A DNA stretch of 64,000 nucleotides, from positions 83,266,001 through 83,330,000 of the forward strand of contig NC_043004.1 of the NCBI RefSeq assembly GCF_006345805.1. The letters run 5' to 3'. The notes below the pieces were generated by a model that was not told the origin of the DNA, made no database searches, and was given only the letters and a program-made list of their open reading frames with translations. A program made the translations under genes and the position numbers. This document shows, in pieces, positions 17,186 to 22,492 of this stretch (its first letter is position 1; each line of letters starts with the position of its first letter). This stretch comes from Octopus sinensis. Taxonomy: Eukaryota.

Positions 17186-17236
17186 TCAGATTAAGTTGTA
17201 ATGCAACACGATGGTGCTCGCTAAAGAACCAACAAT
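17186..17236 (-). CDS. GRL-B last exon, TM7b: IVGSLASTIVLHYNLI*
   Basis: Acceptor caattttttttcttttctttag|ATT, phase 0. Aligns without gaps to GRL-A IISFMMTFTVYCLQ (T to S, Q to N). Confidence 0.7.
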   Translation of the reverse strand: MVGSLASTIVLHYNLI

Positions 17237-17302
17237 CTAAAGAAAAGAAAAAAAATTGTTAGAAAAGCAATAAAGTCTCAAAAAGATGTTATTATTATTA
17301 TT

Positions 17303-17776
17303 GAGTGAGCGAGCAGAGCATGCCATCAAAGTGACACTGGGGTAAAATATACGAAGCCCAGTATGCCCATCATGACTACCCGTACCCGTGATAAGGGTAC
17401 ACCAGGCACATGCATCACAACCATATGTGCGCGACATGGTGATCTCATATCAAGATAAACAGACACATGACCTTGCAGGTGGAGCCCAGTTAGAATTTTT
17501 CTTCAGATCGAGTAACCCATCCCGCTCAAAAGGGTCCCTGAATAGGGTGTTTAAGGACGTTGAAACGAAACACCCATGTTTCCAAAGGTGAATTATCCAA
17601 CCCCAAAGAATCCCTCTCAACCACATGGCTATGATGCTCCCCCACTACTACTTCTGCTCGTGATCAGAGATGCACATATCGTCAGCCACTAAGGGACATG
17701 CTCACTGGTTAAGGTCAAACAACTGACAAGCAAATCTGTGGTATTGAGCAGAATATTTGCTGTAGCCCATCTTTTT
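17303..17776 (-). mobile_element. ~470-bp non-coding interspersed element associated with (TAA)n arrays, copy 1
   Basis: Closely similar to 53609-54075 in the opposite orientation. Both copies end in ...cactc followed by (AAT)n. Confidence 0.8.
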
Positions 17777-18542
17777 ATTATTATTATTATTATTATTATT
17801 ATTATTATTATTATTGTTATCATCATCATCATCATCATCATTATTATTATTATTATTATTATTATTATTATTATTATTATTATTATTATATCATCATCAT
17901 CATCATTATTATTATTATTATTATCATCATCATCATCATTATCATCATCATTATTATTATTATTATTATTATTATTATTATTATTATTATTATTATTATT
18001 ATCATCATCATCATCATCATCATCATCATCATCATCATATTATTATTATCATCATCATCATCATCATCATCATCGTCATCATTATTATTATTATTATATT
18101 ATTATTATTATTATTATTATATTATCATCATCATCATCATCATCATCATTATTATTATTATTATTATTATTATTATTATTCATTATCATTATCATATCAT
18201 TATCATTATCATTATCATTATTATTATTATTATTATTATTATTATTATTATTATTATTACTATTACTACTATTACTATTATTATTATTATTATTATTATT
18301 ATTATTACTATTACTACTATTACTATTATTATTATTATTATTATTATTATTATTATTATTATTATTATTATTACTATATATTATTATTATTATATTATTA
18401 TTATTATTATTATTACTATTACTATTACTATTACTATTACTATTATTATATTATTATTATTATCATTATTATCATTATTATTTTTATTATTATTATTATT
18501 ATTATTATTATTATTATTATTATTATTATTATTATTATTATT
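17777..18542. repeat. ~765-bp compound (TTA)n/(TCA)n/(CTA)n microsatellite
   Basis: Direct inspection; source of the poly-L/I/Y/H ORFs. Confidence 0.95.
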
Positions 18543-18680
18543 CAGTAGTTTTATTTTTATAGCGTGCTTTCACTTCACTACCGAGCGCAGCTCTGTGTGC
18601 CTTAGGTATGTGCTGTGATTTGTTGTGATGCTCTGATGGTTATTGTATGGAAAGTGTTCTGCGTAGGATGTGTGCAGTGC
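18543..18680 (-). mobile_element. 5'-truncated 3' end of the R4/Dong-type LINE
   Basis: Near-identical reverse complement of 48927-49064 (TAHILRRTLSIQ* plus 3' UTR), with (TTA)n on both sides. Confidence 0.9.
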
Positions 18681-18856
18681 TGTGATTATTATTATTATTA
18701 TTATTATTATTATTATTATTATTATTATTATTATTATTATTATTATTATTACTATTAGGTATACCCGTGAAAAATTCAGGGAAAATATATTAAAAATGTA
18801 AGTATCTGTAAATTGTGAGCTGGTTTCATGAGAAATATTACTATATTGTGACAGCT

Positions 18857-19260
18857 AAAGGCGGCGACCTGGCAGAAACGCTAGCACGCCGGGCGAAATG
18901 CGTAGCCGTATTTCGTCTGCCGTTACGTTCTGAGTTCAAATTCCGCCGAGGTCGACTTTGCCTTTCATCCTTCGGGGTCGATAAATTAAGTACCAGTTAC
19001 GCACTGGGGTCGATCTAATCGACTTAATGCGTTTGTCTGTCTTTGTTTGTCCCCTCTGTGTTTAGCCCCTTGTCGGTAGTAAAGAAATAGGTATTTCGTC
19101 TGTCTTTACGTTCTGAGTTCAAATTCTGCCAGGGTCGACTTTGACTTTCATCTTTCGAAATCGATAAATTAAGTACCACTTGTGTACCGGGATCGATCTA
19201 ATCGACTGGAGCCCTCCAACCCCAAATCTCAGAACTTGTGCCTATAGTAGAAAAGTGTAT
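18857..19260 (+). mobile_element. SINE family B with a partially duplicated body
   Basis: aaggcggcgacctggcagaaacgctagc... followed by a second cgtctgtctttacgttctgagttcaaattc unit. Confidence 0.8.
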
Positions 19261-19604
19261 TGTGACAATTACAGAATATAGAACGAAGTGTAAAGCCGAT
19301 AACTATATAATCCAACCAAATGTAAACAGAATTACTATTTAGCCTTAAAATCGCTCTTTTAGTGCTCCGGAACGTTCTTCTGCTATTCTTTTATTCTTCT
19401 ACACGTTCCAGTCATTTGACGCTGGTCATGCTGGAACACCACCCTTTAGTCGAAGAAATCGACCCCTGGACTTATTTCCTGTAAACCTAGTGCTTATTCT
19501 ATCAGTCTCTTCTGCTGAACAGCTAAGTAACACGGACGCCAACACACCACCATCGGTTGTGAAGCAATGGTTGTGGGTAGAAACAAAGAAACAAACACTT
19601 ACAC

Positions 19605-19842
19605 ATACATATATACATATACATACATATATATACATATATACGCACACACACACATATATAGATGTATACATATATATATATATGTATATATATATTT
19701 ATATATATGTATATATATATATATATATATATATATATATATATATATATATATATATATATTTATATATATATATATATATATATATACATATATATAT
19801 ATATATATATATATATATATATATATATATATATATATATAC
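19605..19842. repeat. Long (TA)n array
   Basis: Direct inspection. Confidence 0.95.
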
Positions 19843-20389
19843 ATGGCGAAGAACAAATCTAGTGAGTAATCCTTTGACTCGCTAAAATAAGATCAGGAAC
19901 CAATTGGTCCAAGAAACTAGAGGGTAAATGTTTTTCACTTCTAAATGAATTCCTTTCGAATTTTATCTCTAACTTTTGTGGTTATAGAACCTAGCTGTTC
20001 TTTCTAGCATGTAGAATCCCTATAAGGAGATTCCTTATGTATTTAGATATACACTATATCGTATGACTAATATATAGTCTTTTTGACTAATCTTTTTACA
20101 CGTTAGACCACTTGAAATGTAAATTTTATTTAATTTCCATTTCCCTTTGATATGATTACATACTCTCTCTCTCTCTCTCTCTCTCTCTCTCTCTCTCTAT
20201 ATATATATATATATATATATATATATATATATATATATATATATATATGCGTGTGTGTGTGTGTGTATGTGTTTGTGTGTGTGTCCGTGTATATATATAT
20301 ATATACATATATGACGAGCTTGGACGTGGAGGTGATACAAGCTGGTGCGATTTTGTGGTTTGATGGTATGCCGAGAGAGATCCAGGTCT

Positions 20390-20602
20390 GTTTCTGATAT
20401 TTTCTAAGTACAGCTGCTTCTGCTCTTGACTCGTGTGTTCTCGATTCTGTTGATCTCTGTCTCTCTTATTCTGAAAATACACTCCTCTTTGGTCCTGCTT
20501 CATTTGTTCTATCCGTTGCTGATTTCTTTCCTTCATATGCCGTAGGATTCGTTCCCACCACTCTTGGCTTATTTCAACCATAGCTTTTACCAATTTTGAC
20601 AT
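20390..20602 (-). pseudogene. Fragment with 23-aa periodic repeats, probably the N-terminus of another Helitron Rep-Hel family
   Basis: ISQEWWERILRHMKERNQQRIEQ / MKQDQRGVYFQNKRDRDQQNREH / TSQEQKQLYLENIRNR. Confidence 0.45.
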
Positions 20603-20852
20603 ATTTTGTTCAAACCTGATGTCTGCATTACATAGGACTCAGGGGATCATTGAATGCTTTAAGTTCTCAAATCGATGAGTGGAAATAATTGTTAAACGGA
20701 TTCCTTATGGAATTTCCCAATTAAATTGCTGGCAACTCATTTTCATCCAAACGTTTACCAATTTCAACGGATTTCGCTCAAATTTGATGTTGGTGTCACT
20801 TATTTTGGTTTGAAATGAAGCGCTTGATCACTTAATAATCCCAACTTAATCT

Positions 20853-20878
20853 CCGGCAACGCCGGGCTACACTGTTAG
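20853..20878 (+). mobile_element. Helitron-type 3' terminus (hairpin plus TTAG) of a small non-autonomous element
   Basis: ccggcaacgccgggctacactgttag|t, compared with cccgggcaacgccgggctatgctgctag|t in Helitron 1. Confidence 0.6.
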
Positions 20879-21267
20879 TCTATATGTGTATATATAAATT
20901 GTATTATGTATGTATGTATGTATGTATGTATGTATGTATGTATGTATGTATGTATGTATGTATGTATGTATGTATGCATGTATATTTATTTTATTATATG
21001 AACATTGGCTCCATTTTGAAGTAACTGATTAAAATCTAGCAATATCACCCACTAGGCATTTTGCTCTGTGCTAACAACACATCATACGAAATCTATTACC
21101 TACCCACCATCTCTTTATGTTTACTTCCAGACGTCGACCTAAAGGTCTTTGTGACAACTTTTACGAAAACAAACCTTGTTGGATTCAAAGAATTCGCAGG
21201 GGATAAGGATCTAGATCGTTCCTCTTAAAAGCAACCTAATGAAAACCTTGCATTTTATAGCCATATA

Positions 21268-21600
21268 CATAGGCATGTGAAGGAGCGTAGCTTAGTGGTT
21301 TAGGCAATAGGTGAATGGTCTTAAGGTCGGGAGTTGGATTCCCAGCGGCAGGGTGTGTCCTTGAGCAAGACACTTTATTTCACAAATTCCAGTTCACTCA
21401 GCAAGCAAAAATGAGTAGTACTTGTAATTCAAATGGCCAGCTTTTCACATACTGTGTCACGCTGAATCGTCTTGAGAACTACGTACAGGGCACAAGTTTT
21501 TGTGAAATGCTCAGCCACTGTCACGTTAATTTCACGAGGAGGCTGTTCTCTTGATCAGGTCGACTGGAACCCTTCTAGTAGTAACTGACGGGGTGCCAGT
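21268..21600 (+). mobile_element. tRNA-derived CORE-like SINE
   Basis: ggagcgtagcttagtggtt...gagttggattccc then gtgtccttgagcaagacactt. A related head lies at about 31900-32030. Confidence 0.6.
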
Positions 21601-21737
21601 TTTACTTTGCCATATATACTTGTGCATATTGTGACAGTAATTTCTCACCATTCAGATATCCTTTAGACCTCGATCAAAATTTTCTGTACGATGAAGCTCC
21701 GTGATGGGAGTTGCTTTAAATAGATTTTTATACTTAC

Positions 21738-21827
21738 GGTTAGTAATGTCAAAGGAGTTATAGTCATTAACGAACCGATGTTAATCCCCAATGTAGTTGA
21801 AGACATTCGCTTGAACAGCAACAGCAT
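21738..21827 (-). CDS. GRL-B penultimate exon: MLLLFKRMSSTTLGINIGSLMTITPLTLLT
   Basis: ccttgtgtttccag|ATG ... ACC|gtaagt; 90 nt, phase 0-0, same length as GRL-A exon 3. Confidence 0.85.
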
Positions 21828-22411
21828 CTGGAAACACAAGGAAACATCTATGTCACATGTAAATTGACATAAATCAAGTATAACTGTAAATACGTCGTGT
21901 ATGTCTGTATGAATATGTGAAATTTGGTTGATAGTATGTATGATGTTATGACAGTAAGCCAGTGTATTTAAATATTGCATCATGTTATGTAATAGGGTTT
22001 CCAACCCAATATTTCCGTCCTAGTATTTATAAATTTATGCGATTGGAGAGCTACTGCTTTAATGCAAATATACACACACATACATGCATACCTACAAAAA
22101 TCTGCACACCTATCAATGAAGTATATATGAGAATGTCTAGATATGTAACTATATGAATGAAAATATATACAGAAAAACAAAATATACAAGTCTGCACATA
22201 AACATACATACATATATAAATACATGCATCCATCAATCCAACCATCCATCAATCCATACATACATACATACATACATACATTGATCCATCCATCCATCCA
22301 TCCATCCATCCATCCATCCATCCATCCATCCATACATACATACATACATACATACATACATACATACATACATACATACATACATACATACAGATATACA
22401 CACAAAAGTAC

Positions 22412-22492
22412 CTGTTGTTGATGTTGAAATTCCAATGAAGGAACCATGGTTCTATGTAAAAAAAACCGACTCTTTCGCTCTTGGCAAGAAAT
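22412..22492 (-). CDS. Candidate GRL-B exon 2: [27 protein letters not shown]
   Basis: cccttgttcacatttattttcaag|ATT ... CAG|gtactt; 81 nt, phase 0-0. RKSRF resembles RRSMF in GRL-A exon 2. The AAG acceptor is weaker, so the 5' boundary is uncertain. Confidence 0.5.

Follow-up and report, generated by a model that had tools for sequence, protein, structure and literature searches.

Introduction

In insects, gustatory receptor (GR) genes have long first exons and three short final exons separated by phase-0 introns (PMC6175461), and conserved 3' introns are a hallmark of animal GRLs (PMC7746228). At some loci, such as Gr28b, Gr39a and Gr23a of Drosophila and Gr60a-m of the cockroach, several alternative long first exons share one set of 3' exons. 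The family also has a motif in transmembrane segment 7 (TM7), (T/S)Yhhhhh(Q/K/E)(F/L/M) (PMC7746228). This motif lies in the pore-lining helix S7b, and on gating its Q and F exchange orientations (PMC12635824). Pseudogenes and gene fragments are common in such receptor families, making up 11-44% in the cockroach Blattella (PMC6175461). Here we describe a GR/GRL (7tm_7, PF08395) locus of Octopus sinensis in a stretch of 64,000 nucleotides (NCBI RefSeq assembly GCF_006345805.1, contig NC_043004.1, positions 83,266,001 to 83,330,000 of the forward strand), hereafter the window. It contains an intact gene, GRL-A, and the 3' exons of a second gene, GRL-B. Positions are those of the window unless another sequence is named, and all relevant GRL features are on its minus strand.

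GRL-B is a true second GRL copy, and of its four exons the window contains only the last two. It is probably a 5'-truncated, non-functional relic, judging from the sequence of the surviving exons and their surroundings.

Results

Exons 3 and 4 of GRL-B

The original prediction described a second GRL paralog consisting of 3' exons only, with a 90-nt phase-0 exon identical to exon 3 of GRL-A at 14 of 30 residues and a last exon behind a strong acceptor. All of these features were recovered (Table 1). GRL-B exon 3, which encodes the end of S7a, the hairpin loop and the start of the pore helix S7b, lies between an intact acceptor (...tttccag) and an intact gtaagt donor. Its 14 of 30 identities with GRL-A exon 3 correspond to a tblastn E-value of 6.6e-6 within the window. 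It also matches exon 3 of three other family members, P0005, P0008 and P0011 (described below), at approximately 1e-3 (tblastn). The last exon encodes the remainder of S7b behind a pyrimidine-rich acceptor, ttttttttcttttctttag.

The similarity between the two copies continues into non-coding DNA. The nearest 60 bp on each side of exon 3 are 77-80% identical, with the acceptor tract and a GTAAGTA donor common to both genes, and the last exon aligns with GRL-A exon 4 together with approximately 220 bp of 3' flank. The position and phase of the last GRL-B intron are homologous to those of the family. In the aligned C-termini, LTLFLDRLNTTPSGISVGGFFVIRPSSILT of P0005 runs into IFGSLFTY... in the last exon, and MLLLFKRMSSTTLGINIGSLMTITPLTLLT of GRL-B runs into IVGSLAST... 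at the same point. The two exons are real paralogs of GRL-A exons 3 and 4, with homology that extends into the introns and the 3' flank. The 46-aa fragment that they encode matched no database protein in a word-indexed protein search.

Table 1. Positions of GRL exons, paralogous blocks and neighbouring features in the window
Feature	Position	Strand	Details
GRL-B exon 3	21827-21738	-	30 codons, phase 0-0, reads MLLLFKRMSSTTLGINIGSLMTITPLTLLT
GRL-B last exon	17236-17186	-	16 codons and TGA, reads IVGSLASTIVLHYNLI, stop
Exon-3 paralogy block	21684-21911 vs GRL-A 9021-9259	-	blastn 70% over 240 bp, E = 1e-30
Exon-4 paralogy block	16967-17270 vs GRL-A 5380-5726	-	blastn 61% over 353 bp, E = 2.6e-11
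GRL-A exon 1	14301-13276	-	341 codons, TM1-TM6, six hydrophobic segments, donor tca/gtaagt
GRL-A exon 2	10372-10304	-	23 codons; aligns with exon 2 of P0005, P0008 and P0011
GRL-A exon 3	9169-9080	-	30 codons
GRL-A exon 4	5689-5630	-	IISFMMTFTVYCLQRKNLV, stop; AATAAA 48 nt past stop
Segment X	22111-22518		contains 22492-22412; sole other window copy in GRL-A intron 1, 11684-11929
SINE-like repeat	22876-23343		many copies in window; abuts start of Helitron copy 1
Helitron copy 1	23340-28469	+	Helitron_like_N domain; frame split into several open reading frames
Helitron copy 2	57303-63386	+	PIF1 and Pif1_2B domains
Open reading frame	35662-36714	+	350 codons, hydrophobic N-terminus
Reverse-transcriptase fragments	46638-48559 and 37883-38386	+	two fragments
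Mariner-type transposase frame	51945-52664	+	HTH_48 and Transposase_1 domains

GRL-A and membership in the GR/GRL family

GRL-A, the reference for GRL-B, is an intact four-exon gene downstream of it (5630-14301) that spans approximately 9 kb, as does its O. vulgaris relative at locus L001. Its introns are in phase 0 throughout, and its protein of approximately 413 aa has seven hydrophobic segments. GRL-A is very divergent, with 19-25% identity to its nearest full-length relatives. The protein collections searched contain neither an exact nor a close match, so that it appears to be unannotated.

GRL-A itself gave no match in a Pfam search, a PDB sequence search or a word-indexed protein search. 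An exhaustive phmmer search of 1.84 billion representatives found ten relatives. Among them are P0004 of Octopus bimaculoides (A0A0L8FL56, UniProt name 'Gustatory receptor'; E = 2e-13), P0005 of O. sinensis (XP_036361416.1; E = 1e-10) and P0008 of O. sinensis (LOC118764607); P0004 and P0005 are the closest named relatives. These three proteins pass the curated Pfam cut-off of 26.6 bits for 7tm_7, with 35.0, 31.7 and 27.4 bits, respectively, and the membership of GRL-A by sequence is transitive, through such relatives. GRL-B is tied to 7tm_7 by its paralogy with GRL-A and by the direct exon 3 matches to P0005, P0008 and P0011.

The predicted fold of GRL-A points to the same family. An AlphaFold2 model built on a 12-sequence alignment reached a pLDDT of 66.6 and a pTM of 0.61; a single-sequence model was useless (pLDDT 39). 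When the alignment-based model was compared to the PDB with Foldseek, the top 20 matches were all insect odorant receptors (OR) or GRs, with E-values of 1e-5 to 8e-3 and TM-scores of 0.53-0.69. The structures matched include MhOR5, Gr43a, Gr64a, AgOR28, Orco and BmGr9. The remaining matches had E > 0.2 and TM-scores of approximately 0.1. The label 'GRL' is justified for GRL-A. The tests of seven transmembrane segments and of fold were applied to GRL-A only, as GRL-B has just the TM7 region.

The gene plan of the octopus family, seen in GRL-A, in O. vulgaris L001 and in O. sinensis locus L006, consists of a first exon of approximately 340 codons encoding TM1-TM6, followed by phase-0 exons of 23, 30 and approximately 16-21 codons that encode the anchor helix S7a, the hairpin and the pore helix S7b. 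GRL-A resembles described GR/GRL genes in its seven hydrophobic segments and in its long first exon and three short phase-0 exons; it differs in lacking a Pfam match of its own and in its low identity to relatives. The GRL-B exons align with the S7a-hairpin-S7b region and keep GI.IG..., I.P, LT and I.GSL. However, GRL-B is only a 46-codon C-terminal fragment and its TM7 motif is altered.

The O. vulgaris locus (L001, OX597821.1:106245077-106273906) has an intact 347-codon GRL first exon at 10001-11044 of that sequence. The product annotated there, a 170-aa 'hypothetical protein' (P0011), joins approximately the first 101 codons of the first exon to exons 2-4, and this gene model is probably wrong.

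Search for the missing 5' half of GRL-B

The original prediction noted that no hydrophobic minus-strand open reading frame of approximately 340 aa exists upstream of the GRL-B exons. This observation held, as the longest such frame at 22.5-64 kb is 255 aa and unrelated. Similarity searches of the window were equally negative. In tblastn of both strands with GRL-A and its ten relatives, only low-complexity noise was found outside GRL-A. A blastn comparison of the GRL-A locus (5000-14800) and its 5' flank (14300-17000) to 16.5-64 kb revealed no exon 1, exon 2 or 5' flank; it returned the exon-3 block, the exon-4 block, segment X and dispersed repeats only. For a DNA profile of exon 1 and its 5' flank, GRL-A was combined with two homologs of 70% identity. 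With nhmmer at maximum sensitivity, this profile found only GRL-A in the window, as did a single-sequence nhmmer search with exon 2 and its flanks.

No exon 1, exon 2 or 5' flank of GRL-B exists in the 42 kb upstream; these parts are physically missing and have not simply eroded. Since the non-coding flanks of exons 3 and 4 can still be aligned at 61-80% identity, a 1-kb exon 1 that had decayed in place would be visible. Together with the DNA profile that finds GRL-A alone, this refutes the earlier suggestion that exon 1 has decayed within the window. The 5' half of GRL-B has either been deleted or lies more than 42 kb away. The intron between exons 2 and 3 measures 1.1-3 kb in the three genes examined, compared to the more than 42 kb needed for GRL-B. 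An inversion that flipped exons 1 and 2 to the plus strand was considered and rejected, as neither exon was found on that strand.

A tentative 81-nt exon 2 had been proposed at 22492-22412 on the minus strand. This proposal did not survive: the interval is a chance open frame in non-coding DNA, not an exon. It lies within segment X (Table 1). The window has only one further copy of this segment, 73-81% identical by blastn, which is located in GRL-A intron 1 and runs the other way relative to the gene. The copy in GRL-A has a 2-nt indel that breaks the proposed frame. The predicted peptide is no more similar to exon 2 of the family than expected by chance, with 946 of 2000 shuffles scoring as high. 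The minus strand from 64000 to 21828 was also scanned for open frames of 69 nt between AG and GT with four family exon-2 peptides. Nothing scored above the plus-strand control, and the same scan found GRL-A exon 2 at once. In segment X, a 125-bp core is accompanied by a (TATG)n microsatellite and an AT-rich tail. The GRL-A copy precedes exon 2 and the GRL-B copy precedes exon 3. No copy of the core was found in 80 kb of other octopus loci. The segment is either a mobile element of low copy number or the product of a small inversion in what was intron 1.

A GRL-A-like first exon is present at approximately 594-1660 of four genomic Logan contigs (L002-L005; SRR11869384, SRR11869385, SRR11869390 and SRR11869394), at 70% nucleotide identity to GRL-A including 110 bp of 5' flank. 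Two in-frame stop codons, present in all four sequencing runs, mark it as a pseudogenised relative. The exact GRL-A open reading frame is absent from the Logan collection, indicating that these contigs are probably from another species. Their first exon could be an ortholog of GRL-A or of GRL-B. It was not used as the missing exon 1 of GRL-B, as the contigs have nothing in common with the window outside GRL-A.

State of the remaining GRL-B exons

Several features of GRL-B speak against function. Exon 3 is 72% identical to that of GRL-A, no better conserved than its intron flanks, and the ratio of nonsynonymous to synonymous substitution (dN/dS) is 0.95, over 90 nt only. Relative to GRL-A exon 4, the last exon is short by 9 nt, with the stop codon and 3' untranslated region in register. 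No AATAAA or ATTAAA poly(A) signal occurs within 500 nt downstream, and a 5-bp deletion is found at the spot that matches the GRL-A AATAAA. The missing exon 2 encodes part of the S7a anchor region.

The TM7 motif of the octopus family is TY(V/I/A)(I/L)VV(L/I)QT, with individual members reading TYVIVVLQT, TYILVVIQT and TYAIVVLQT. GRL-A, with TFTVYCLQR, is a partial match. The ungapped GRL-B sequence, STIVLHYNL, agrees with at most two of the four motif positions and does not amount to the motif. The DNA alignment of the two genes slightly favours a 9-nt gap inside the helix, with the position of the gap uncertain. In that alignment, the N of GRL-B may correspond to the N in the tail of GRL-A (RKNLV), so that the motif Q would have been deleted and not changed to N. 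The original prediction had read the same residues as substitutions, TY to ST and Q to N, that suggest a different pore; as stated, this is not supported. A different pore in GRL-B is possible but unsupported. Given the 9-nt deletion and the dN/dS of approximately 1, the sequence of GRL-B is more suggestive of relaxed constraint than of a retuned pore.

The intactness of the two exons was compared to a neutral expectation. In simulations with 13% change per site, both frames and the three splice dinucleotides survived in 21% of trials. Intactness is therefore weak evidence of function in GRL-B.

Apparent alternative first exons at locus L006

An O. sinensis locus, L006 (CM016866.1:83050339-83098122, reversed; LOC118764606), provides a precedent for shared 3' exons. 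It has two intact first exons (open reading frames 9929-11053 and 23231-24298 of L006), which are 43% identical, and one set of exons 2-4 (27093-27161, 30166-30255 and 37719-37784) downstream of both. The first exons lie 3-16 kb from exon 2. In the NCBI model of O. sinensis P0005, the distal first exon is joined to exons 2-4, and in O. bimaculoides P0004 the ortholog of the proximal first exon is joined to the same 3' exons. An exon-4-like relic, ISGYQVAFYIVILQASSET followed by a stop, lies between the two first exons at 14922-14978. Its AG acceptor is gone, and it is probably the last exon that the upstream copy abandoned.

From these gene models, L006 looks like a tandem pair whose upstream member has lost its 3' exons and come to use those of its neighbour. 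It appears to represent, in a mollusc, a receptor locus with alternative first exons of the insect type. Like the Drosophila and cockroach loci, L006 follows the same gene plan and has more than one first exon, whereas GRL-B has no first exon in the 42 kb that precede its 3' exons. The presence of two first exons over one 3' set makes alternative first exons a plausible option for the GRL family.

The proximal first exon of L006 ends in a GC donor (GCAAGT, 24277-24283) in O. sinensis, and its Logan homolog P0009 reads on as if the donor were GT.

Window and neighbouring DNA

The window is AT-rich and loaded with microsatellites and short interspersed elements (SINEs), and no tRNA genes were found in it. 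Its repeats match O. vulgaris and O. sinensis loci at 80-90%, and its protein relatives are from octopus only. The presence of two Helitrons upstream of GRL-B, as originally described, is borne out by their Helitron_like_N and PIF1 domains; the two copies are 92-95% identical to each other. Recognisable transposon DNA begins approximately 1 kb upstream of GRL-B exon 3, with a SINE and then Helitron copy 1. By estimate, at least approximately 25 kb of the 42 kb upstream looks transposon-derived, and approximately 17 kb is without a recognisable transposon. The latter includes the plus-strand open reading frame at 35662-36714, previously called a "secreted gene", which has no Pfam match and no exact record in sequence collections.

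Capture of the GRL-B exons by a Helitron was rejected. Helitron copy 1 starts at approximately 23340, 1.5 kb from exon 3, and copy 2 carries no GRL sequence.

Each Helitron copy is directly preceded by the same SINE in the same orientation (22876-23343 and 57047-57290). Copy 2 has approximately 0.9 kb of extra sequence (58562-59161 and 59260-59567), including an open reading frame with an STPR-repeat domain. The 44-50 kb stretch has a strong AT skew (0.32-0.38).

Discussion

GRL-B most closely resembles the pseudogenes and fragments left by birth-and-death evolution in tandem chemoreceptor arrays. It lies in tandem beside an intact gene, is without essential exons, is embedded in transposon-rich DNA and has a dN/dS of approximately 1. 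It differs from such relics in that its surviving exons have no stop, frameshift or splice-site mutation. A whole-gene tandem duplication would have given rise to GRL-B, as the upstream copy, and GRL-A. A later rearrangement would then have deleted the 5' half of GRL-B or moved it away. The remaining exons may look intact because too little time has elapsed for visible disablement. We infer both this order of events and the loss of function in GRL-B.

Several observations weigh against a non-functional GRL-B. Both frames are open, without stops or frameshifts, the three splice sites are of consensus quality, and the 9-nt indel in the last exon keeps the frame. Where exon 3 differs between the two genes, GRL-B has kept the family residue at eight sites and GRL-A at four, and GRL-B exon 3 scores better against relatives than GRL-A exon 3. 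This greater proximity to the family indicates that GRL-B was probably constrained over much of its history, and it could still be so today. The TM7 motif, which GRL-B lacks, is diagnostic but not definitive (PMC7746228). Octopus GRL introns reach 16 kb, in a 27.8-kb gene of O. sinensis. The open frames, the splice sites, the in-frame indel, the exon 3 comparison and the 27.8-kb gene also favour GRL-B as a complete working gene, with a single exon 1 and exon 2 beyond the 64 kb and an intron 2 of more than 42 kb, inflated by the two Helitrons, fragments of long interspersed elements (LINEs), the mariner and SINEs. The large share of transposon-like DNA upstream fits such inflation. However, exon 2 would also have to lie more than 42 kb away, far beyond the distance in the three genes examined, and the inflated intron would include some 17 kb without a recognisable transposon and the open reading frame on the opposite strand. 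The dN/dS of approximately 1, the loss of the pore-helix motif with the 9-nt deletion and the missing poly(A) signal also argue against it. A complete working gene is thus unlikely.

Other explanations retain a role for first exons outside the window. Several alternative long first exons could share the GRL-B 3' exons, as at Gr28b and Gr39a. L006 has this architecture, with one gene model in each of two species using a different first exon, and the insect layout likewise has long first exons that lead into three shared short final exons (PMC6175461). Yet neither a first exon nor the shared exon 2 is found in the 42 kb upstream, the L006 first exons lie just 3-16 kb from exon 2, and GRL-B bears signs of relaxed constraint, making this arrangement highly improbable. 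A GRL-B first exon upstream might instead now be spliced past GRL-A exon 1 into GRL-A exons 2-4, with the GRL-B 3' exons being abandoned at an intermediate stage toward an alternative-first-exon gene. L006 would be the end state of such a process, as its first exon 1a is modelled onto the downstream 3' exons and the exon-4 relic is without an acceptor; in GRL-B, exon 2 is already gone and exon 4 is damaged. This scenario requires a splice of more than 54 kb, as there is no first exon within 42 kb, while the O. sinensis evidence consists of gene models only and the window shows no such splicing; we regard it as very unlikely. Finally, the two exons could be chance open frames unrelated to GRL, given that they have only 30 and 16 codons and that the 46-aa fragment matches no database protein. 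Their collinearity with GRL-A, the DNA homology in introns and 3' untranslated region (E = 1e-30 and 2.6e-11), the identical exon boundaries and phases, and the exon 3 matches to three other family members refute this explanation and leave it with almost no probability. The GRL-B fragment is better explained as a relic of a duplicated gene.

It is decidedly unlikely that the GRL-B 3' exons are live and serve a first exon, or several, at more than 42 kb upstream, or that a GRL-B first exon uses the 3' exons of GRL-A. If either were true, the locus would mark a step in the emergence of a chemoreceptor gene with alternative first exons and, together with L006, would indicate that the insect-style arrangement of many first exons and shared pore-helix exons operates in molluscs too.

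As a probable relic, GRL-B is a routine by-product of chemoreceptor gene turnover and should be annotated as a gene fragment instead of a gene, with the 81-nt 'exon 2' left out. The more useful context is provided by GRL-A, an intact and highly divergent octopus GRL with the ancestral GR gene plan. If transcripts confirm the gene models of L006, that locus would show, outside the arthropods, that alternative-first-exon receptor genes arise from tandem duplicates.

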